In this document: positions 121-50,008 of the stretch, piece by piece
Layout of the letters: each line of letters starts with the position of its first letter
Numbering within the stretch: position 1 is the first letter of the stretch
Assembly (NCBI RefSeq): GCF_001194135.2
Contig: NC_068981.1
Location: forward strand, 78,578,919 to 78,630,485
Source: Octopus bimaculoides
Lineage: Eukaryota
Reading direction: 5' to 3'
DNA length: 51,567 nucleotides
Program-made: the position numbers and the translations under genes
Notes under the pieces: model-generated
Databases searched by the model: none
Told to the model about the DNA's origin: nothing
The model's input: only the letters and a program-made list of their open reading frames with translations

Positions 121-350
121 ATCATCATCATCATCATCGTTTAATGTCCACTTTCCATGCTAGCATGGGTTGGACGATTTGACTGAGGACTGGTGAAACC
201 AGATGGCTACACCAGGCTCCAATCTGATTTGGCAGAGTTTCTACAGCTGGATGCCCTTCCTAACGCCAACCACTCCGAGAGTGTAGTGGGTGCTTTTACG
301 TGCTACCGGCACGAGGGTTAGTCACGCGGTACTGGCAACGACCTCGCTCT
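121..350 (-). mobile_element. SINE family 1 copy (RTE-like 3' tail ending in (GAT)n)
   Basis: Reverse complement of the motif aggaagggcatccagctgtagaaactctgccaaatcag...ccaacccatgctagcatggaaag...gttaaacgatgatgat, which recurs many times in the window. Confidence 0.85.
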
Positions 351-3598: not shown

Positions 3599-4299
3599 NN
3601 NNNNNNNNNNNNNNNNNNNNNNNNNNNNNNNNNNNNNNNNNNNNNNNNNNNNNNNNNNNNNNNNNNNNNNNNNNNNNNNNNNNNNNNNNNNNNNNNNNNN
3701 NNNNNNNNNNNNNNNNNNNNNNNNNNNNNNNNNNNNNNNNNNNNNNNNNNNNNNNNNNNNNNNNNNNNNNNNNNNNNNNNNNNNNNNNNNNNNNNNNNNN
3801 NNNNNNNNNNNNNNNNNNNNNNNNNNNNNNNNNNNNNNNNNNNNNNNNNNNNNNNNNNNNNNNNNNNNNNNNNNNNNNNNNNNNNNNNNNNNNNNNNNNN
3901 NNNNNNNNNNNNNNNNNNNNNNNNNNNNNNNNNNNNNNNNNNNNNNNNNNNNNNNNNNNNNNNNNNNNNNNNNNNNNNNNNNNNNNNNNNNNNNNNNNNN
4001 NNNNNNNNNNNNNNNNNNNNNNNNNNNNNNNNNNNNNNNNNNNNNNNNNNNNNNNNNNNNNNNNNNNNNNNNNNNNNNNNNNNNNNNNNNNNNNNNNNNN
4101 NNNNNNNNNNNNNNNNNNNNNNNNNNNNNNNNNNNNNNNNNNNNNNNNNNNNNNNNNNNNNNNNNNNNNNNNNNNNNNNNNNNNNNNNNNNNNNNNNNNN
4201 NNNNNNNNNNNNNNNNNNNNNNNNNNNNNNNNNNNNNNNNNNNNNNNNNNNNNNNNNNNNNNNNNNNNNNNNNNNNNNNNNNNNNNNNNNNNNNNNNNN
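3599..4299. other. Assembly gap (others at 9310-9339, 17817-18372, 46067-47004, 49182-49574)
   Basis: Runs of N. Confidence 1.
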
Positions 4300-5432: not shown

Positions 5433-5594
5433 ATATATCTCTCTCTCTCATATATATATATATTTAGGCCATAAAAGCAAAGTGGCAGGTTTGGAAGGAT
5501 TCAAAGAATGTAGGCAGCAGGGAATTATATTATACCAAGTTGCTGGAAAAGTGACTTGGTGATGGGTGTATTTAGCACCGGGAGAAGTAGAAAG

Positions 5595-6700
5595 GAAGAT
5601 GTTTTCCTAATCTGTTGGTTGCTGCAGAAGCTAGTAGTAGATAAAGGATTGGTGAGAGCTATCCAAACCATGTACAGGGATGCTGTCAGTAAGGTGAGAG
5701 TTAACAATGAGTATAGGGATAAATTTAGTATGCAGGTAGTTCACCTGGGTTAGACTCTCAGTCCCCTCCTATTTATCATTGTCCTCCAGGCCTTAACAGA
5801 GGAGTTTAAGGTTGGCTGCCTGTGGAAACTCCTTTATGCTGTTGATCTTCTTCCAATATCCAAATTGGTAGCAAAATTAGAAAAGGAATTCCATTGTGGA
5901 TGTAAAATCTGGAATCAAAGGGCCTTAAAGTTAAATTAGAAAAGACCAAAGTCCTAGTAAGCAAGGAACCAGGTAATATGCTTATCCTTTCAGGAAAATA
6001 GCCCTGATAGTAATTCCATATGGTGTACCCAGTGCAAATTATAGACACATAAGTGCAGTGGAATCTCTGGAAGATTAACAAAGTAGACTTTGTTTGTGGT
6101 AGATGTGCAGAAGCAATAAACACTAGGAACACACAGGAAATAGATTTTCTTGAATGTCCATGAGGATTCTTAGAAGTGGTAGACAGTTTCTGTTACTTGG
6201 GTAATCTAATTAGCAGTGGAGAAGGAGGCTCTGTAGTTGTTAGGATATTCACCAGCTACAGAGAAGGCTTTTACTTCAGGCTGTAACAAAAGGTCTCTCT
6301 CTCAGGGTGAAAAGCAGATTGTATGGTGCTTGCATATGAACAGCATTGCTACATAGCAATAAAACATGGACTGTAAATGCAGAGGACATGCAAAGGCTAG
6401 AAAGAAATGTAGCTAGCATGTTGGGTTGGATGTGCAATGTCAGCTGTGTGCATGTATTACAAAATGCAAATGTGCTGAAAGAAAATTTGAGCATAAAAGG
6501 CTTTAGATGAAGAGTGCAAGAGAGAAGGTTGTGCTGATATATGATGCATATGGATGAAGACAGCTGCATAAAGAAATGCTGATAACTGAATGTAAAAGAT
6601 ACTTGTAGAAGAGTGGAGACCCAGGAAGACATGGGACAAAATAGTGAAGTCTGATCTTAGGTCATTGAGATGAAGGAAATGACAAAGGGTTGAGATGAAT
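5595..6700 (+). mobile_element. RTE-clade LINE 3' half, heavily disrupted
   Basis: LVRAIQTMYRDAVSKVRVNNEY..VHLG.TLSPLLFIIVLQALTEEFKVGC.WKLLYA.DL, plus later FCYLG and C-terminal remnants. Confidence 0.85.
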
Positions 6701-8589: not shown

Positions 8590-9275
8590 AAACAAGCAAG
8601 CCACATAGAAACATCTCCTTCATCAGCTGCCACCATTAAAACACCGGCATTTCGAAGAATGAAGGCAGTACGCATCATTGAAATGGTTCTTCCCACGAAC
8701 ACAAATTAAATCATTTTTGTGGAGGATAGTGGCGGACGGAAAACAAGACAGGAAAATGAAACGGTGAATAAATATATATATATATAATACACACACACAC
8801 ACTCGTTACCAAGCAAGGTAATATTCCTCCACTCTTAAGCACACAAATAGCACAACGGCCATGATTTAATATTGCAAACAATACTACCTATATGAGGGTG
8901 GAGTCTGTTCACAGTGGTGAGATGATGTCTAGGAAAGGAGATGTAAACACACACACACATATACACACAACCATTCACATATATGATAAGCTTCTTTCAA
9001 TTTCTATTTACCAAATTTTCTTGCAACATTTTGGTTGGTTGTCTGGCGTTAGGAAGGGCATCCAGCTGTAGAAACTCTGCCAAATTAGATTGGAGCCTGG
9101 TGTAGCCATCCGGTTGCACCAGTCCTCAGTCAAATCGTCCAACCCATGCTAGCATGGAAAGCGGACGTTAAACGATGATGATGATGATGATGATATATAT
9201 ATATATTCGAAATGCCGGTGTTAAAACGGGGGTAGCTGATGAAGTAGAATGTTCTCTATGTGGCTTGTGTGTTTT
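8590..9275. repeat. Inverted pair of a short repeat (about 8590-8654 and 9207-9275)
   Basis: caagccacatagaaacatctccttcatcagctgcc..aaaacaccggcatttcga is the reverse complement of tcgaaatgccggtgtt..agctgatgaag..ctatgtggcttg. Confidence 0.8.
9041..9192 (+). mobile_element. SINE family 1, 3' portion, well preserved
   Basis: Near-identical to the reverse complement of 121-270. Ends in (GAT)n. Confidence 0.85.
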
Positions 9276-9347
9276 CTCGTCTATGTTTTGTTTGCAATGT
9301 CCTGTACCCNNNNNNNNNNNNNNNNNNNNNNNNNNNNNNTACTATTT

Positions 9348-12024: not shown

Positions 12025-12430
12025 CACTGGCATGGCTGTGTGACAAGAGGCTTGCTTCCCAACCACATGGTTCTGGGTTCAAACTTACTGCGTGGCACCT
12101 TGGGCAAATGTCTTCTACTATAGCTTCAAGCCAACCAAAGCCTTGTGAATGGTAGATAGAAACTGAGAGTAGTCCATTGTATACAACATAAATACATATA
12201 TATCTATGTGTGTGATGTCTTTGTGTCTGTGTTTGATCATTACCACTGTTTGACAACCAGTGTTGGTGTGTTGACATCCCTGTAACTTAGTGGTTCAGCA
12301 AAAAGAGGTCAATAGAATAAGTATCAGATTTTCAGCAAACAAGTATGGGGGTAATTCATTTGAATAAAATTCTCGAAGGTGGTTCCCCAGCATGGCCGCA
12401 GTCTAGTGTCTAAAACAAGTAAACGTTAAA
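12025..12430 (+). mobile_element. tRNA-derived SINE family 3 with a CORE-like central segment (other copies near 10110, 25720 minus, 27950, 32620)
   Basis: Head ggcatggctgtgtg..gcttgcttcccaaccacatggttctgggttca, then gcgtggcaccttgggcaaatgtcttctactatagc, which resembles the CORE domain known in octopus OR-type SINEs. Family name not verified. Confidence 0.7.
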
Positions 12431-13464: not shown

Positions 13465-14733
13465 TCAGGTTGTGTAAAAAGTAAGCAACGTTTTGAACCA
13501 TGAAGAGTTTGTGCCAGATTTTTGCAGAGTTTGGAATTTTTTTTAAGCACCTATTTTTCTATTGTCTGATAATACAAACATAGACTCACCCAAGTATATC
13601 ATTAAATTAACATTGATGTTTTTTGCATTGTTGTTACAATAATCTGAAATGAAAATATCAAAGCGCAACATTCAAGCAATTTTGCTATTCAACTTCAAAA
13701 AAGGGCATAACACAACTGAAACTGCTCATGATATCGAGATGTTTGGTGATGAAATGACCACTGAGTGGTCAGCTCAAAAATGGTTTAAACGATTTCGCAA
13801 TGGAGACCTGAGCCCTGAAGATTGTGAGCATAGTGGACGCCCATCTGTCATCGATGATGGTCAATCAAAGACCATCATTGAGAAAGATCCATGTAAAACC
13901 ACTCAAGAACTGACAAAAGAACTTCAACTTAGCCAGAAAACTGCCTGCAATCATTTGCATGCGATCAGAAAATCAAAAAAGCTTGACAATTGGATACCAC
14001 ACTATTTGAATGAAAATCAGAAAATGCGCAGATATGAAATTTGCTTGTCACTTCTTCTCCGTAACCAGACTGATCCATTTCTCAACTGTATTGTAGCTTG
14101 CAATGAAAAGTGGATTCTGTACAATGATAAAAAAATGTTCTTCGCAGTGGTTGGACAAAAATGACGCACCAAAAACCTTTCCTAAACCTGAACTCTTCAA
14201 AAAGAAGGTTATGGTGACTGTTTGGTGGTGTACTGCTGGACTCATCCGCTATAACTTCTTAAAACCCGGAAAAACTATTACTGCAGAAACATATTGCCAT
14301 GAAATTGTCAAAATGAATGAAAAACTGCTACTCCTCCACCCCAGACTGGCCAACAGAAGAGGGCCAATCATTCTTCATGAGAATGCTCGACCACACATTT
14401 CACTATTGATGCTTCAGAAGTTGAGGGAACTTGGCTACGAAGTTCTTCCCCAGACCTTTCTTCTACCGACTACCACTTTTTCAAGCACCTTGATGGTTTC
14501 CCTTGAGAGAAGGAGTTAAAAAATCAAACCAATGCTGAAAGTGCATTCAAAGAGTTTATCAGCTCCAGAACTCCAGCTTTCTATGTTACTGAAATAAACA
14601 AACTTGTAACTCGTTGGCAAAAATGTGTTGATTGTAATGGCACTTATTTCGATGAATAAAATTTCTGCATTGTTGAAATATATTCTGATGAATTTCATGT
14701 TTCAAAACGTTACTTACTTTTTACTAAGCCTGA
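13465..14733 (+). mobile_element. Full-length (1269 bp) non-functional mariner transposon with Hsmar1/cecropia-like TIRs
   Basis: TA at 13463-13464 and 14734-14735. Left TIR tcaggttgtgtaaaaagtaagcaacgttttgaa pairs with right TIR ttcaaaacgttacttactttttactaagcctga. Encloses the transposase pseudogene. Confidence 0.95.
13649..14659 (+). pseudogene. Mariner (DD34D) transposase pseudogene
   Basis: HTH N-terminus, WIPHYL (WVPHEL motif), CNEKW (first D>N), HENARPH (second D>E), PDLSSTDYHFF, and C-terminus RWQKCVDCNGTYFDE*. Frameshifts near 14130 and 14450 and an in-frame stop. Confidence 0.92.
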
Positions 14734-17815: not shown

Positions 17816-18993
17816 TNNNNNNNNNNNNNNNNNNNNNNNNNNNNNNNNNNNNNNNNNNNNNNNNNNNNNNNNNNNNNNNNNNNNNNNNNNNNNNNNNNNN
17901 NNNNNNNNNNNNNNNNNNNNNNNNNNNNNNNNNNNNNNNNNNNNNNNNNNNNNNNNNNNNNNNNNNNNNNNNNNNNNNNNNNNNNNNNNNNNNNNNNNNN
18001 NNNNNNNNNNNNNNNNNNNNNNNNNNNNNNNNNNNNNNNNNNNNNNNNNNNNNNNNNNNNNNNNNNNNNNNNNNNNNNNNNNNNNNNNNNNNNNNNNNNN
18101 NNNNNNNNNNNNNNNNNNNNNNNNNNNNNNNNNNNNNNNNNNNNNNNNNNNNNNNNNNNNNNNNNNNNNNNNNNNNNNNNNNNNNNNNNNNNNNNNNNNN
18201 NNNNNNNNNNNNNNNNNNNNNNNNNNNNNNNNNNNNNNNNNNNNNNNNNNNNNNNNNNNNNNNNNNNNNNNNNNNNNNNNNNNNNNNNNNNNNNNNNNNN
18301 NNNNNNNNNNNNNNNNNNNNNNNNNNNNNNNNNNNNNNNNNNNNNNNNNNNNNNNNNNNNNNNNNNNNNNNNATATATATATATATATATATATAGTATT
18401 CATGATATGTGGACACATTGATGATGCAGTCCTCTTCATGTAGAACTTCTAAATAGGACCAATCAAAGAAGCTCACAGATTCTGGGTCACCCTGACCACT
18501 AAAGACACAATCACTCATCCAACAGTTGGTCTCCATTCTACAAGCACTTGTCCATTCACCCTGTTTTTACCACAAATAATGATAGTAATGATAATAATAA
18601 TAATAATAATAATAGTAATAATAATACCAACAGCAACATTTATTTAAATTACCTATTCTGTTTTTTACTACCCATATTTAGGAATAAAGGTCTTTTTATT
18701 TTTTGATGTTGAATGTTTCTGATTTCTCTTTTAGTTTCCGCATGATTAACTTTTTAAAAATTTAATTTTTATTCCTTTTCTAATTTGTTTGTTTTTCTTG
18801 GTTTTGTATTTTCTTTGTGCAACTCAAGCTTTGTTTTTAATATTCTAGTTACTGAAAAATGACCAAAAAAAACAAACAAACAAAAAAAACGAAAAAAAAA
18901 CGGAAAGCTGCTCTGCTGACTGCACATGTTTTATACGTAAATTTAGCATGTTTGTTTTGTCTTGATATCGTTATATTTAACTGTTCTCTTCAG

Positions 18994-19059
18994 ATCCTCT
19001 AAGCATGCAAGCAGCTCGCAAGAAAAGAGAAAGTGTTAAAAACTCTACAACTATCAGAG
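18994..19059 (+). CDS. sdk: Probable 66-nt symmetric (phase 1-1) sidekick exon: (D)PLSMQAARKKRESVKNSTTIR(G)
   Basis: Preceded by ctgttctcttcAG and followed by GTcagt. Length is 22 codons with no stop in the frame that joins the phase-1 exon at 22266 (G|GA = Gly). Assignment to sdk is inferred from position, strand and phase, not from homology. Confidence 0.65.
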
Positions 19060-19465
19060 GTCAGTTCTGATATATTGAACTTATTCATTAATAACATCAT
19101 AATCATTTACTCATACACAATTTTTTTTTTCCCCTCCAACTCAAATCCTTTCCAATTAATCCTTAATTTCTAGGTCAGCTAATTTTACTCAGTATTCTGC
19201 CACATCAAACTAGTTAGATGTTGTTATAAGTAGGAAAGAATAACAACTAGCAGCATTAGACATGTTTCACAATTTACTTTTCTAAAATCACACTCTGAAT
19301 AATAATGTATGTTACAACAGGCAAGTTTAAAAGGTAGCCTCATTGTTGGCTATCTGATATTAACTTCTTAACTCTTGTTCATGAATTAATTGTAACTTAG
19401 CAGACAGCTTATTCATCTCTCATGAATTCTAGATGATATGATCCTTTGAAAGATTTTAATTAATA

Positions 19466-22265: not shown

Positions 22266-22439
22266 GAAAATGGACTGATATTTTGTTGAAAGAATCACCA
22301 CAGACTGGTGCATTGCTTAATATTCACAGCTTAGATACTGGCAAAGTGTACCAATTCCGTGTACTTGCCTACAATTGGCTTGGAATTGGACCTCCAAGTG
22401 AACCATCTAAACCTATGTTGATACAAGATCCAGAAAAAG
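22266..22439 (+). CDS. sdk: Sidekick exon, C-terminal half of the last FN3 domain: (G)KWTDILLKESPQTGALLNIHSLDTGKVYQFRVLAYNWLGIGPPSEPSKPMLIQDPEK
   Basis: Acceptor tttacattttcAG, donor GTattt, 174 nt, phase 1-1. Contains the FN3 signature L-x-x-G-x-x-Y-x-F-R-V-x-A-x-N-x-x-G-x-G-x-P-S. Confidence 0.95.
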
Positions 22440-25880: not shown

Positions 25881-26130
25881 ATCATCATCATCATCATCAT
25901 CATCATCGTTTAACGTCCGCTTTCCATGCTAGCATGGGTTGGACGATTTGACTGAGGACTGGTGAAACCAGATGGCTACACCAGGCTTCAATCTGATTTG
26001 GCAGAGTTTCTACAGCTGGATGCCCTTCCTAACGCCAACCATTCCGAGAGTGTAGTGGGTGCTTTTACATGCCACCGGCACGAAGGCCAGTCAGGCAGTA
26101 CTAAGCAATGGCCACGCTCAAAATGGCAAC
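25881..26130 (-). mobile_element. SINE family 1, young copy, antisense to sdk
   Basis: Near-identical to 121-350 over about 200 bp. Confidence 0.88.
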
Positions 26131-26656: not shown

Positions 26657-26803
26657 GTGAAATTGGAAAAATGCGTACATTCAGTGAACGGCCGTTTCAT
26701 ACAGAATGGTGGTTCTTGCTTATTATTGCCCTGAGTGGTTTAATTGTCATAATGGCTGTTGTGCTGTTATTGGTCCTGGTTGGCAGGAAGCGAAAGATGA
26801 CCC
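26657..26803 (+). CDS. sdk: Sidekick transmembrane exon: (G)EIGKMRTFSERPFHTEWWFLLIIALSGLIVIMAVVLLLVLVGRKRKMT
   Basis: Acceptor ttttctgcatAG, donor GTaagt, 147 nt, phase 1-1. PF-x-x-EWWFL followed by a hydrophobic helix and a basic stop-transfer stretch matches the Sidekick juxtamembrane pattern. Confidence 0.95.
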
Positions 26804-28379: not shown

Positions 28380-29070
28380 TGATAGCAGATTGATGAAGAA
28401 ATTAAGAATATGAAGGCAGGAAAAGCCCTGATTAATCAGGAATCACTGCTGAGATACTTAAAATATTTAACAGAGTAGGATATAGTTGTTAACTTGTATG
28501 GCTAATAGAGTTTGTACAAGAATGTGTTGCACTCAACAACTGATGTAGTAGCCATTATATTCAACTGTTAGAAGGGTAAAGAAGATGATTTTGAGAAAGA
28601 TCATAACAGAGGCATCAAATTACAAAAAAGTGTTATAGCTCAACAAATTAGAAAGAGAATTAACCTAGATGAGATGCTATTATTTGGTTTCGTGCCATGG
28701 AGAAATACTGCTGATGCCCTCTTTCTTGTAAGGCAACTTCACGAGAAGTATTTAGCCCAAAGTAAGCTGCTGTACTTGTCATTCATTAGTCTGGAGAAAG
28801 CCTCATTCCCTGATCTGATGGTCACTGCAGAAGCTAAATTTAGATAAATGGTTGGTGACAGCCATTCAAGTCATGTACAGTACAGAGGTGTTGTCAGTAA
28901 GGTGAGACTTAGCAAAGAGTACAATGATGAATTTAGTGTGCAAAGAAGAGTTCACTGGGGCTTGATTCTCAGCCCCCACCTATTTATTATATTCCTCTGG
29001 GCCATAACAGAGGAGTTTAAGATTTGGTGCCAGTGGGATCTACTTTTTGCTGATGACTTTGATGTATACT
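28380..29070 (+). mobile_element. RTE-clade LINE RT fragment
   Basis: FGFVP.RNTADALFLVRQLHEKYLA..FISLEKA, then VVSKVRL..EFSV..VH.G.ILSP.LFII..ITEEFK..WDLLFADD. Confidence 0.85.
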
Positions 29071-30076
29071 TTGATACTGAACCTGAATCTGTAGTATTTC
29101 TAGCTGATTCAGTGACAGTATAAAAGTTCCTTTTTGTTGGCTCATTGAGAGACTAAATGCTAATACATGTGGTTGATGTAACACAGTTTGCTCCACTAAC
29201 TACATTGTTTTCATTGTTGTTTAGCTCCATAGTCAAACCCATGATCAAAGGCATTCCAACTTGTATCATACTGTGCTTTTGGAGATATTTAAGGTTATTA
29301 TCCTTGGCTCAGTGGTTAGAGAGTCAGGCTCACAATAATGAGGTAGTGAGTTTGATTCCTGGACCAAGCAATTGTGTTGTGTTCTTGAGCAAAACGCTTT
29401 ATTTCACGTTGCTCCAGTTCACCCAGCTGTAGAAATGAGTTGCAACATCACTGGTGTCAAGCTGTATTGGCCATTGCCTTTCCCTTGGACAACATTGGTG
29501 ATGTGGAGTGGGAGGTTGGTATGCATGGGTGACTTGTTGGTCTTCCATGAGCAACTTTGTGCAAACTTGTGCCTCAGAGGGTAACTTTCTGGGTGCAACC
29601 ACATGGTCATTCATGACCAAAGGGAGTCTTTACCCTTTTTTACTTTCTTTTGCTCTGTTACCCATAACTATTCAGACAAAAGAAAGACAGTATCACTGAG
29701 GTGACTTCTGGGATTGACTCCTTATAGATTTCTGCAATTGAGTTAGGGATGTTCTTCAATAGCTTTCTTTGAACAAAATATTTCAGATCCTTTTACACCA
29801 TGTTTGCATGTTTGTTTACTTGATCAAAATAATACAACATATAGAAACTCCCGGCCTTGCTTGAACAAAACTAATCACCATTCTGTATTAGGTAAAGTGT
29901 TAACTGATTTCTTTGTTGGTACCTTGGTGCATTGTAATAGTTTCATATAATCCCACCCTTGAACTTGTATGCATGTTAACAATTTATTCATATTACCTGT
30001 CCTTATTATTAACATATACTTTGCTACTTAAATTTCTGACCTTACCTAATATTACCATTGTTACAACATTTTACAG

Positions 30077-30215
30077 GTGAAACTATTCGCAGACGTAACA
30101 CCCCACCTCTTCCACTGGAACCCCCAGTACTTGATGATGGAGGATTTTCTACATTTGATCGACGTCAGTCACGTAGAACTATCGGTCATCGTACCAATTC
30201 TTTGCGTAGTATGAG
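30077..30215 (+). CDS. sdk: Sidekick cytoplasmic exon: (R)ETIRRRNTPPLPLEPPVLDDGGFSTFDRRQSRRTIGHRTNSLRSM(R)
   Basis: Acceptor cattttacAG, donor GTtagt, 139 nt, phase 1 to 2. Joins both flanking exons in frame. Confidence 0.9.
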
Positions 30216-33591: not shown

Positions 33592-33715
33592 ATCACCACC
33601 ACGACCCAGTCCTGCTAGTGTGACATATTCTGATGATGACTTGGACACTAAACCTCCATTAGATGACAACAGTAGTAGCTTAACAGAAAAGCCAGATTTA
33701 GAAGAGTTGACAGAA
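33592..33715 (+). CDS. sdk: Sidekick cytoplasmic exon: (R)SPPRPSPASVTYSDDDLDTKPPLDDNSSSLTEKPDLEELTE
   Basis: Acceptor tttttgttcAG, donor GTaagt, 124 nt, phase 2 to 0. SPPRPSP-x-S and SS-x-TEKP are conserved Sidekick tail motifs. Confidence 0.95.
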
Positions 33716-36387: not shown

Positions 36388-36651
36388 CCAAGTGACGAGA
36401 GTGAAGATGAAACTGTAAAAAATACAAATACCACAACTGCTGGAACATTCTACAATCAGTACGTTAACGATACAGTCCGCCAGTCTTGGCAGCAGAGCAA
36501 TCCTCGATCAATGTATAGCGCCTACAACTACACAGATAGTGAGGAAGCTGATAGTAGCACTTACGGCATGAATGTTAATGGTGGCTACATGATGGTTAAT
36601 AATACTGCAGGATCTCGAACACCAGTCGCAGGTTTTTCATCGTTTGTTTAA
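36388..36651 (+). CDS. sdk: Sidekick terminal coding exon, 87 aa plus stop: PSDESEDETVKNTNTTTAGTFYNQYVNDTVRQSWQQSNPRSMYSAYNYTDSEEADSSTYGMNVNGGYMMVNNTAGSRTPVAGFSSFV*
   Basis: Acceptor tttctttcttttatAG, phase 0, TAA at 36649-36651. Ends in GFSSFV, the Sidekick class I PDZ-binding end. Not in the supplied ORF track. Confidence 0.97.
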   Translation, partial: PSDESEDETVKNTNTTTAGTFYNQYVNDTVRQSWQQSNPRSMYSAYNYTDSEEADSSTYGMNVNGGYMMVNNTAGSRTPVAGFSSFV

Positions 36652-37797: not shown

Positions 37798-38346
37798 ATC
37801 AGCCCCATGGCAGTGTCCCATCATTGCTGCAGCCAAACAGCTGACAGTACCATAAGAGTAATCCCAATATACACGTCTTTTTCCTTGATTAATTTGTCAT
37901 CATCATCTTCATTATCACCATCAATATCATCAGTATTTTCATACAACACTGTGGTGCATCGAGAGGCAGTAAATTCTTGCAAACCAGAGTCCACAACTCA
38001 GTTTCAGTTGTCCAGATGAATTTGCTTGTCTTCAATCAACATTACTGATTCTGTTGGAAGAGTCATGATTGTCTCATAAATGTCTTTTCCCCAATCATCT
38101 CTGTTGAAAATTATCATCACCATCATCATTATTAATATTATTAATGTGGTGAGCTAGCATAATTGTTAGTATGCTGAACAAAATACTTGGTAGCATTTCT
38201 TCTGGCTCTGTGTTCTGAGTTCACATTCCACCAATGTCAACTTTGCCTTTCATTGTTATGAGTCAATAATATCTGAGTATTAGGGTCATTGTAATCAAGC
38301 AACCCCTTCCCCTAAAATTTCAGGCTATGAGCCTATAGTAAAAAGG

Positions 38347-45530: not shown

Positions 45531-47079
45531 TTACTATTATTATTATTATTATGAAATGTAAAATGAGAGGAATGTTCTTGACAATCTGGATTTTCTCAGA
45601 ACTGTTTCATTTCTGATGCTTGTTGTCATAACAACAATATGAACAAACATTACAGCTTCCAAGTTCTTCATTTCAATATGTTGATTTTTTGTTCCTATAG
45701 AAGAAAAACAAAAACTTCGCTGGAAACATTACAATATCTTACATATTATTTTTTAAATTTATCAACAAATTTTTGTTTTATTTCTGAAATGGCCAAAAAT
45801 GCAATTGTTATATAATCTAATGTGTGTGTGTGTGTGCGTTTGAGAGAGAGAGAGAGAGAGAGAGGTTTGGCAGAAAAAGAATATTGAGAAACAACACAAA
45901 GAATATTTGATCTCTATGGGATTTTTCAAAACCCACCCGCAGAAAGAAAAAGAAAAGCAAAAGGTGGGGGCTGGAATATCTTCATGATTGCTTGACATAC
46001 TATAAATAGTAGCTATTTTACCCCCAAATCACAAACTAATGTCTTAAAAATGTGAGAAACATAGGANNNNNNNNNNNNNNNNNNNNNNNNNNNNNNNNNN
46101 NNNNNNNNNNNNNNNNNNNNNNNNNNNNNNNNNNNNNNNNNNNNNNNNNNNNNNNNNNNNNNNNNNNNNNNNNNNNNNNNNNNNNNNNNNNNNNNNNNNN
46201 NNNNNNNNNNNNNNNNNNNNNNNNNNNNNNNNNNNNNNNNNNNNNNNNNNNNNNNNNNNNNNNNNNNNNNNNNNNNNNNNNNNNNNNNNNNNNNNNNNNN
46301 NNNNNNNNNNNNNNNNNNNNNNNNNNNNNNNNNNNNNNNNNNNNNNNNNNNNNNNNNNNNNNNNNNNNNNNNNNNNNNNNNNNNNNNNNNNNNNNNNNNN
46401 NNNNNNNNNNNNNNNNNNNNNNNNNNNNNNNNNNNNNNNNNNNNNNNNNNNNNNNNNNNNNNNNNNNNNNNNNNNNNNNNNNNNNNNNNNNNNNNNNNNN
46501 NNNNNNNNNNNNNNNNNNNNNNNNNNNNNNNNNNNNNNNNNNNNNNNNNNNNNNNNNNNNNNNNNNNNNNNNNNNNNNNNNNNNNNNNNNNNNNNNNNNN
46601 NNNNNNNNNNNNNNNNNNNNNNNNNNNNNNNNNNNNNNNNNNNNNNNNNNNNNNNNNNNNNNNNNNNNNNNNNNNNNNNNNNNNNNNNNNNNNNNNNNNN
46701 NNNNNNNNNNNNNNNNNNNNNNNNNNNNNNNNNNNNNNNNNNNNNNNNNNNNNNNNNNNNNNNNNNNNNNNNNNNNNNNNNNNNNNNNNNNNNNNNNNNN
46801 NNNNNNNNNNNNNNNNNNNNNNNNNNNNNNNNNNNNNNNNNNNNNNNNNNNNNNNNNNNNNNNNNNNNNNNNNNNNNNNNNNNNNNNNNNNNNNNNNNNN
46901 NNNNNNNNNNNNNNNNNNNNNNNNNNNNNNNNNNNNNNNNNNNNNNNNNNNNNNNNNNNNNNNNNNNNNNNNNNNNNNNNNNNNNNNNNNNNNNNNNNNN
47001 NNNNATATATATATATATATGTATGTATATATATATATATATGTATGTATATATATATACATATGTGTGTATATATATA

Positions 47080-48732: not shown

Positions 48733-50008
48733 CAAAACACAGGCCGATCATGGCTAGAATGTCTTAGATTATAGGTAAATTATATCAACAACATAATAAT
48801 AATTAATGAATTAATAGCAACAAGATCACCCTTAGTTCAACTGTGATCACCATTTTCTGTTTCTGGTTGTGAAAAAAAAAAAAATTGTAATTATTCACGC
48901 CATCTTTCCTGATGCCCACCATCACCACCACCACAACCATCCAACACCATTATAAAAACAAATTTTAAAAAAAAGGAAATCAAAGAAGAAAATAATATCC
49001 TGACCAACAAATTGTTCATTAAAATAACAATAATCCCAATATATAAGACAAAAAAATTAAAAAATACAGAAGCAGTTTAAACTTTTATTTGTAATGCTAA
49101 AATTGTTTTCAAAATAAACTCCTTCTTCCATTCTTGGTATCATGCTTTTTTAAAAAAAAAATCATTTTTTTTTTTTTTTTTNNNNNNNNNNNNNNNNNNN
49201 NNNNNNNNNNNNNNNNNNNNNNNNNNNNNNNNNNNNNNNNNNNNNNNNNNNNNNNNNNNNNNNNNNNNNNNNNNNNNNNNNNNNNNNNNNNNNNNNNNNN
49301 NNNNNNNNNNNNNNNNNNNNNNNNNNNNNNNNNNNNNNNNNNNNNNNNNNNNNNNNNNNNNNNNNNNNNNNNNNNNNNNNNNNNNNNNNNNNNNNNNNNN
49401 NNNNNNNNNNNNNNNNNNNNNNNNNNNNNNNNNNNNNNNNNNNNNNNNNNNNNNNNNNNNNNNNNNNNNNNNNNNNNNNNNNNNNNNNNNNNNNNNNNNN
49501 NNNNNNNNNNNNNNNNNNNNNNNNNNNNNNNNNNNNNNNNNNNNNNNNNNNNNNNNNNNNNNNNNNNNNNNNNNGCTTCTCCAACATACTGAAAATTTAG
49601 AAATAGCAGTCAAAGAACTACTGATTCCAAACTACAAATTTTTTTCGAGTTATATAGACACTTTCAAATTTATTTGAATATTGTGCTGAAGATCGGAATA
49701 GAGTACCTTCATACTCTTAACCGTGAAACGTCGTACACGATTAACTAAAGGCAGGTTTGTTTTTGCTTTTCTCTTCTGTGTGTGCCATAAATATCGTCAT
49801 CCGTTAGAGAAAAAAATTTGTAGTTTGGAATCAGTAGTTCTTTGACTGCTATTTTTAAACCGTATGAGATGAATAACAGTAAGATTTATTGTAGCATTAA
49901 ATTGTATGTCTGTGTGTGAGTGAATGCGACATAATAAAACACATTATAAGACTGGCCGTCATGTAAAGAGAAAAGAGTGTGTGTAAGTAATTCATGTATG
50001 TGGGTACG

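Follow-up and report, generated by a model that had tools for sequence, protein, structure and literature searches.

A conserved cassette exon of octopus Sidekick with a predicted proprotein-convertase site in the membrane-proximal FN3 domain

The window, i.e., the whole analyzed stretch of 51,567 nt of Octopus bimaculoides DNA, carries on its + strand the 3' end of Sidekick (Sdk), a single cephalopod gene. We are highly confident that a 66-nt segment in the window, here called exon C, is a real and conserved cassette exon that inserts into the C-C' loop of FN3-13, the last and membrane-proximal FN3 domain of the protein. The exon encodes the sequence R-K-K-R, and the most likely mechanism, in which we have moderate confidence as judged from the sequence, is that the exon C-containing isoform is cleaved by a proprotein convertase and becomes a two-chain receptor. 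The splicing of exon C would then probably decide between one chain and two chains. Sidekicks act in homophilic recognition, in synaptic layer specificity in the vertebrate retina, and in cell patterning in the fly eye; neither how they are processed nor the majority of their splice variants has been characterised (PMC7479261). No paper on exon C, on convertase processing of Sidekick, or on cephalopod Sdk splicing was found in the literature. Exon C and the isoforms are already present in the automated RefSeq annotation, and the principle is known as well: protease sites can be supplied by alternative exons, and convertases cut in or beside membrane-proximal FN3 domains.

The gene had been named as Sidekick in a preliminary description of this DNA, and the assignment is borne out by the C-terminal tail and by the domain content of the full-length orthologue. 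The last coding exon ends in ...NNTAGSRTPVAGFSSFV followed by the stop codon, and the PDZ-binding hexapeptide GFSSFV is present. The tail ...MMVNNTAGSRTPVAGFSSFV is identical to that of the O. bimaculoides Sdk XP_029641972.1 quoted in PMC7479261. O. bimaculoides XP_052823500, with six I-set and 13 fn3 Pfam matches, is identical to the window over all of the window's exons (Table 1), and of its domains only the last 1.5 lie in the window. Over these exons the Sdk sequences of O. bimaculoides, O. sinensis, and O. vulgaris do not differ at the protein level. As had been claimed, the exon that follows exon C starts in the middle of the FN3 domain with GKWTDIL (ttttcAG/GAAAATGG, the slash marking the boundary). 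It begins at about position 34 of the 84 positions of the fn3 profile, with the Pfam match at profile positions 51-82, and it is identical in all Octopus isoforms. The upstream half of FN3-13 is not in the window: a tblastn search with the constitutive exon that precedes this intron, with exons A and B (described below), and with the alternative terminal exons recovered exon C alone, so the window begins inside the intron. An FN3-like ORF at 12275-12364 was considered as the upstream half of FN3-13 and rejected, as it is without usable splice sites and resembles an interspersed repeat.

Table 1. Features of the Sidekick gene in the window (positions are those of the window; a slash marks a splice boundary).
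Feature	Position	Strand	Remarks
3' splice region of exon C	18950-18993	+	Pyrimidine-rich tract and acceptor ...ctgttctcttcAG; acceptor PWM 3.4 bits
Cassette exon C, phase 1-1	18994-19059	+	(D)PLSMQAARKKRESVKNSTTIR(G); inserts into the C-C' loop of FN3-13
R-K-K-R codons CGC AAG AAA AGA	19017-19028	+	Predicted proprotein-convertase site; scissile bond after 19028
P1' Glu codon of the predicted convertase site	19029-19031	+	
N-S-T N-glycosylation sequon	19041-19049	+	5-7 residues past the predicted cut
5' splice site of exon C, GAG/gtcagt	19060-19065	+	Non-consensus C at +3; donor PWM 4.7 bits
Constitutive exon, phase 1-1, second half of FN3-13 (strands C' to G)	22266-22439	+	GKWTDILLKESPQ...MLIQDPEK; Pfam fn3 match
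Juxtamembrane stalk and transmembrane helix exon	26657-26803	+	GEIGKMRTFSERPFHTEWWFLLIIALSGLIVIMAVVLLLVLVGRKRKMT
Cytoplasmic exon	30077-30215	+	RETIRRRNTPPLPLEPPVLDDGGFSTFDRRQSRR...
Cytoplasmic exon	33592-33715	+	RSPPRPSPASVTYSDDDLD...EELTE
Last coding exon	36388-36651	+	Sdk PDZ-binding tail ...AGFSSFV, TAA stop

Re-reading of the sequence reproduced the coordinates and the translation of the preliminary description exactly, including the canonical AG and GT flanks, the frame-preserving length, and the presence of both R-K-K-R and N-S-T. The genomic sequence reads ...ctgttctcttcAG, then exon C (ATCCTCTAAGCATGCAAGCAGCTCGCAAGAAAAGAGAAAGTGTTAAAAACTCTACAACTATCAGAG), and then GTcagt. The exon C peptide is DPLSMQAARKKRESVKNSTTIR, and with the preceding G and the GA of the next exon the frame becomes D-P-L-S-M-Q-A-A-R-K-K-R-E-S-V-K-N-S-T-T-I-R-(G), in which there is no cysteine. 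The GC content of the exon is 39% versus 27% in the flanks. In a simple splice-site PWM the acceptor score lies between the extremes seen for the gene's five certain exons (0.4 to 10.4 bits) and the donor score above those of the same exons (−0.3 to 3.8 bits). With the candidate's own PWM scores as thresholds, no other AG...GT segment that was 27-150 nt long and open in phase 1-1 passed in the 22 kb before 22266, nor did any other on the whole + strand of the window, and Markov-simulated introns contained 0.07 such segments per intron. Because these thresholds were set post hoc, at the scores of exon C itself, this decoy test is supportive and not decisive. The trivial explanation would be that a large AT-rich intron happens to contain an open stretch between AG and GT, as short segments of this kind are common and lenient thresholds gave six decoys in the same 22 kb; it is refuted, however, by the exact peptide in three Octopus species and the homologues in Argonauta and in decapod mRNA contigs, and we give it practically no credence. 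The only other segment on either strand that passed the splice-site and open-frame thresholds, at 37925-37978 (−; DYCNNNAKNINVNLMIYLG), is taken as a chance decoy because it is of low complexity and lies downstream of the gene.

Two points of the preliminary description had to be modified. The exon had been called a micro-exon, a label that does not suit it since 66 nt exceeds the usual limits of 27 or 51 nt; it is a small cassette exon instead. The UGC element of SRRM4/eMIC-type microexons, located between the pyrimidine tract and the AG, was looked for, and the last 30 nt of the intron before exon C contain no TGC. The GCAUG elements that had been pointed out around the exon are indeed located at 18740, 18946, and 19003, and each lacks the leading T of TGCATG. 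Enriched or conserved (U)GCAUG near an exon would be a mark of Rbfox regulation. An enrichment of these elements is not supported: GCATG recurs on the + strand every 680 nt or so, and at that rate one to two comparable triplets are expected by chance somewhere in the window, so the cluster near exon C is not significant. Part of the upstream regulatory sequence of exon C is missing, because a 556-nt assembly gap (17817-18372) lies approximately 620 nt upstream.

To collect related proteins, an exhaustive HMMER search was carried out with the window-encoded C-terminal 304 residues, followed by a search with the Argonauta protein as the query, and the 90% clusters were opened. A word-indexed protein search with a 131-aa peptide of exon C, FN3, and TM gave no matches. 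The exact exon C peptide is present in the O. bimaculoides isoforms X1 and X2 (XP_052823500 and XP_052823505), in the O. sinensis isoforms X1-3, X5 (XP_036356590), and X6 (XP_036356596), and in O. vulgaris CAI9716807. A clean skip, AKKQ/GKWTDIL, is found in O. bimaculoides X3 (XP_052823515) and O. sinensis X8 (XP_036356608), and O. sinensis X4 (XP_036356588) and X7 (XP_036356601) are also without exon C and carry exons A and B or exon B. Exon C is therefore an annotated cassette exon, and the expectation that it can be skipped in frame agrees with these isoforms, which are RefSeq/GenBank model proteins, so that the splicing calls are those of the annotation.

In the full-length Sdk of Argonauta hians (GAB1600757), which aligns from query residue 1 and whose gene spans 567 kb, DSLSMQAARTKRDNVKNSTIR is located between ...LLQAKKQ and GKWTDIL. 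For decapods, inclusion is seen in two intron-less Logan RNA-seq contigs, L001 (SRR29271479) and L002 (SRR27666065), both of about 7 kb and with an uninterrupted 6.5-kb ORF in which 21 codons are homologous to exon C. The former clusters with the SDK of Acanthosepion pharaonis and the latter is from a second decapod. The insert is present in 16/16 sequences of the two decapod clusters, and the splicing switch may therefore be octopod-specific or rarely used elsewhere.

The intron that splits FN3-13 is a splicing hotspot in O. sinensis, where two more exons, both located outside the window, can precede exon C. Exon A encodes 45 aa (VCFSHHGQGHAGDGAPEYKYSRSNYHVEVPLLTREPHAYQPRDPES; VCFSHHGQGH...RDPES) and exon B 12 aa including cysteine (GDKKGYRKVCDC). 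Together they bring unpaired-looking cysteines just ahead of the predicted convertase site in O. sinensis isoforms. O. sinensis X9 and O. bimaculoides X4 and X5 stop shortly after ...LLQAKKQ by way of alternative terminal exons. FN3-13 breaks off in them after its first half, and neither TM helix nor tail follows, which makes them candidates for secreted Sdk ectodomains. Elsewhere in the protein, an 8-aa N-terminal mini-exon (EYITSLHK) directly after the signal peptide is alternatively present in Octopus isoforms, and O. sinensis X1 and X2 differ between FN3-1 and FN3-2 (QQQAPS versus QQPPS).

The position of the insert was determined from a 34-sequence alignment of FN3-13, in which it follows the C strand (...ILGYLLQAKKQ) and precedes the C' strand (GKWTDILL). 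Exon C thus adds 22 residues to the C-C' hairpin of the last FN3 domain, approximately 85 residues before the membrane. In this type I protein the predicted cut lies ahead of the TM helix, on the lumenal or extracellular side. The claimed location in the membrane-proximal FN3 domain is in this way confirmed and narrowed to one loop by the alignment together with AlphaFold2. Structural modeling of the loop had been proposed in the preliminary description. With exon C, the AlphaFold2 model had a mean pLDDT of 81, with values of about 90 or higher for the strands and 50-63 for the insert; it dropped to less than 50 at residues R58-S64, which surround the predicted scissile bond, and a weak helix was seen over P10-P2. 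Without exon C, the mean pLDDT was 91, and a strand at 38-45 was followed by two residues and then by a strand at 48-55. The core of the FN3-13 model resembles FN3 structures of titin, contactin, and Robo (TM approximately 0.8). According to the two models, skipping would give an intact, canonical FN3 domain and inclusion an exposed, flexible loop, and the convertase motif is predicted to lie in this exposed, flexible, and hydrophilic surface loop.

The non-cephalopod Sdk proteins in the alignment (gastropods, bivalves, Lingula, an annelid, a nemertean, arthropods, echinoderms, and vertebrates) have 4-9 residues in this loop, several insects having about eight more. The short loop described for fly and vertebrate Sdk is thereby corroborated, and other mollusc Sdk proteins have it likewise. 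Exon C is confined to coleoid cephalopods among the Sdk proteins compared, in line with the suggestion that the insert might be lineage-specific. No Nautilus Sdk was among the matches of the search with the full-length Argonauta protein.

Octopods and decapods diverged on the order of 200-300 million years ago. The coleoid inserts are aligned in Table 2. R-x-K-R-[E/D] is fixed in the four coleoid lineages, as RKKR/E in Octopus, RTKR/D in Argonauta, and RTKR/E in decapods, with K or T at P3 and always an acidic residue at P1'. This core fits the furin/proprotein-convertase consensus R-X-K/R-R, in which P3 is the free position. Six insert positions are invariant, and three of them are the P4 Arg, the P2 Lys, and the P1 Arg, so that R-x-K-R is the best-conserved part of exon C, while the flanks diverge. 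The NST sequon, in contrast, is confined to octopods, being present in Octopus and Argonauta; decapods have AVST, and only S-T is common to all four. Octopus uses AGA for the P1 Arg and decapods use CGA, with GAA or GAG for P1'; because the P1 codon changes synonymously, it is the protein that is under constraint rather than a purine-rich RNA element. Exon C supplies the single R-x-[KR]-R of the 1967-residue ectodomain. The same is true of every cephalopod Sdk examined, and isoforms without exon C have no such motif in the ectodomain. In 22 residues of ectodomain composition, the expected number of R-x-[KR]-R motifs is about 0.003.

Table 2. Alignment of the coleoid exon C inserts.
Insert	Residues
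Octopus insert	D P L S M Q A A R K K R E S V K N S T T I R
Argonauta insert	D S L S M Q A A R T K R D N V K N S - T I R
Cuttlefish-type insert	D P Q S S Q N Y R T K R E T E A V S - T K R
Second decapod insert	D L P N S A N Y R T K R E N G A V S - T K K

These data bear on the explanation that exon C is tolerated splicing noise or a neutral loop, in which the RKKR would be incidental, e.g., a by-product of a purine-rich exonic splicing enhancer (AAGAAAAGAGAAAG). We consider this improbable. The exon does evolve faster than the whole protein, the two decapod inserts being identical at 14/21 residues compared to 81% overall, the motif overlaps a GAR-rich stretch, and 5% of shuffles of exon C's own composition contain the motif. 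However, the exon is present in both octopods and decapods with its frame kept despite a 3-nt indel, and it is part of the dominant assembled decapod transcripts. In addition, the motif is kept at the protein level through the AGA/CGA switch and the K/T exchange at the free position, whereas conservation of an enhancer would predict otherwise.

The proposed mechanism of a convertase-nicked Sdk contains steps that we infer, namely the cleavage, the two-chain association, and any effect on adhesion. A furin-type convertase of the trans-Golgi or the cell surface would cleave the exon C isoform behind the RKKR. The N-terminal chain would consist of six Ig domains, 12 FN3 domains, and strands A-C of FN3-13, and the membrane chain of strands C'-G (C', E, F, and G), the TM helix, and the PDZ-binding tail. 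Since both sheets of the FN3 domain would mix strands of both chains, the chains should stay associated, initially held non-covalently as in the LAR-type phosphatases and L1, and the ectodomain of the nicked Sdk could later dissociate or be shed. The skipped isoform, with a tight canonical FN3 domain, would be an uncleavable, stable single-chain Sdk. Taken as a whole, the interpretation of the preliminary description, a splicing switch between an intact adhesive Sdk and a nicked or shed one, is partly supported. Some features could speak against cleavage. An acidic P1' residue is tolerated by furin but is not optimal, and the weak helix of the AlphaFold2 model covers P10-P2. The N-glycan site of octopods, five residues past the cut, and the conserved S-T could hinder the convertase, and a basic loop beside the membrane could act non-proteolytically. 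In the Sdk review the word "shed" does not occur, and the sole match to "cleav" is a cleavable signal peptide (PMC7479261).

A non-proteolytic role would mean that exon C is a real cassette exon whose flexible, positively charged, and glycosylated loop tunes the contact with the membrane, heparan sulfate, or a cis partner, or the spacing or flexibility of the stalk. We regard this as the less likely but still realistic explanation. It gains plausibility from the report that the FN3 domains of Sdk rest on the membrane (Tang et al. 2018, cited in PMC7479261), and mini-exons in FN3 and Ig loops of LAR-RPTPs alter binding without cleavage (PMC8711739). In all coleoids the net charge of the insert is positive, and in octopods the insert carries the NST sequon, which is however absent in decapods. 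A basic patch, on the other hand, would not need an exact R-x-K-R, while in exon C P4, P2, and P1 are fixed, P3 is free, P1' is acidic, and the rest drifts. Furthermore, independent lineages have placed R-x-R/K-R, and not just basic residues, into the same loop.

Such inserts were found outside the coleoids in three proteins. The Sdk of Elysia marginata (GFR99907) contains ...YQQLRARRKREDGTDTW... with the polybasic sequence RARRKR in the same C-C' loop of the last FN3 domain. Trichuris suis (KFD51708) has an insert of about 30 residues with RLRR, and Trichinella murrelli (KRX42346) an insert with RRRR, both in the same loop. As far as the sequences tell, the polybasic inserts of Elysia and the trichinellid nematodes are independent of the coleoid exon C. 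The repeated origin of polybasic inserts in Sdk FN3 loops is explained more easily by selection for proteolytic processing than by chance. Polybasic stretches were also noted by eye, from their flanks, in the apparent C-C' loops of more N-terminal FN3 domains: KRRRRR at residues ~985-1000 of the annelid Owenia fusiformis (approximately FN3-5) and RRRRKR at residues ~1365-1380 of the nemertean Tubulanus polymorphus (approximately FN3-11).

The convertase-nicked Sdk may be compared with several known systems. In the insulin receptor, the alternative mini-exon 11 (36 nt) lies just before the furin site, and the insert is in the C-C' loop. This disordered insert in the membrane-proximal FN3 domain carries the tetrabasic furin site RKRR at residues 720-723, through which one chain becomes two (PMC7039211). 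The Sdk insert is similar to the FnIII-2 insert domain of the insulin receptor and IGF1R in having a furin motif in the C-C' loop of the membrane-proximal FN3 domain. In contrast, the insert of the insulin receptor has approximately 120 residues, is constitutive, and gives disulfide-linked chains, while that of Sdk has 22 residues, no cysteine, and a site that is as a whole optional by splicing. A means of disulfide linkage between the chains is thus not provided by exon C, and cysteines occur only in the optional O. sinensis exons A and B. The likeness is a functional analogy and not homology.

L1 is cut at dibasic sequences within its third FN3 domain, giving fragments of 140 kDa and 80 kDa (PMC6403279), and plasmin and the convertase PC5A are implicated in its cleavage according to references 14 and 28 of that paper. 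Like the L1CAM family, to which it does not belong, Sdk is a neural IgSF adhesion molecule with a candidate basic cut site inside an FN3 domain; unlike in Sdk, the L1 site is in FN3-3 of five, constitutive, and not made by a cassette exon. In the LAR-type (IIa) phosphatases a furin-like cut is made near the end of the Ig/FN3 ectodomain, and the E and P subunits are held non-covalently and can later be shed (PMC8711739). The PTPRK-type (IIb) phosphatases are cut by furin as well, and their E and P subunits remain bound (PMC12067748). Both types resemble Sdk in bearing loop mini-exons, including meC in FN5, but their furin site is constitutive and absent from the mini-exons. In Kit ligand (exon 6), ErbB4 (JM-a/JM-b), and the neuregulin stalk variants, splicing sets the membrane-proximal cutting of type I proteins. 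The sites of these proteins are in unstructured stalks and are used by cell-surface sheddases, whereas in Sdk a convertase motif is inserted within a folded FN3 domain.

If the convertase-nicked Sdk is real, Sdk joins the few Ig/FN3 receptors (insulin receptor, L1, and LAR/PTPRK) that work as convertase-nicked two-chain molecules, and in Sdk the nick would be optional by splicing. Exon C would then be a possible and precise route by which the nervous system regulates the stability of Sdk adhesion. Without cleavage, exon C would still be a conserved, lineage-specific, and correctly annotated loop variant of modest interest. A broader reading, which we put forward as a speculation and hold to be unlikely in its entirety, joins several of the observations above. 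The C-C' loop of the last Sdk FN3 domain would be a recurrent convertase point that has evolved independently in coleoids, Elysia, and trichinellid nematodes, and the octopod intron would combine exon A, the Cys-containing exon B, the furin exon C, and the truncating terminal exons into an insulin-receptor-like insert domain, cell by cell. Neurons could in this way choose among a single-chain, a nicked two-chain, a secreted, and possibly a disulfide-bridged Sdk, and so tune the durability of the homophilic synaptic contact.

The remainder of the window is AT-rich intron sequence with many repeats. Assembly gaps (runs of N) are present, in addition to that upstream of exon C, at 3599-4299, 9310-9339, 46067-47004, and 49182-49574. 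A remnant of a mariner/Mos1-type transposase at 13643-14516 (+) matches HTH_48 (E-value 5 × 10−14) and Transposase_1 (E-value 1 × 10−23), and the copy is frameshifted, as the two domains are in two overlapping frames. Reverse-transcriptase-like ORF fragments at 28572-29120 (+) and 5514-5936 (+) are probably decayed intronic LINE copies; the first includes a weak RVT_1 match at 28848-29120 that is below the Pfam cut-off. An element of approximately 130 nt is repeated at 187-318 (+), 25956-26090 (+), and 9000-9125 (−), with the translation GLVKPDGYTRLQSDLAEFLQLDALPNA..., and is probably an abundant octopus interspersed repeat.
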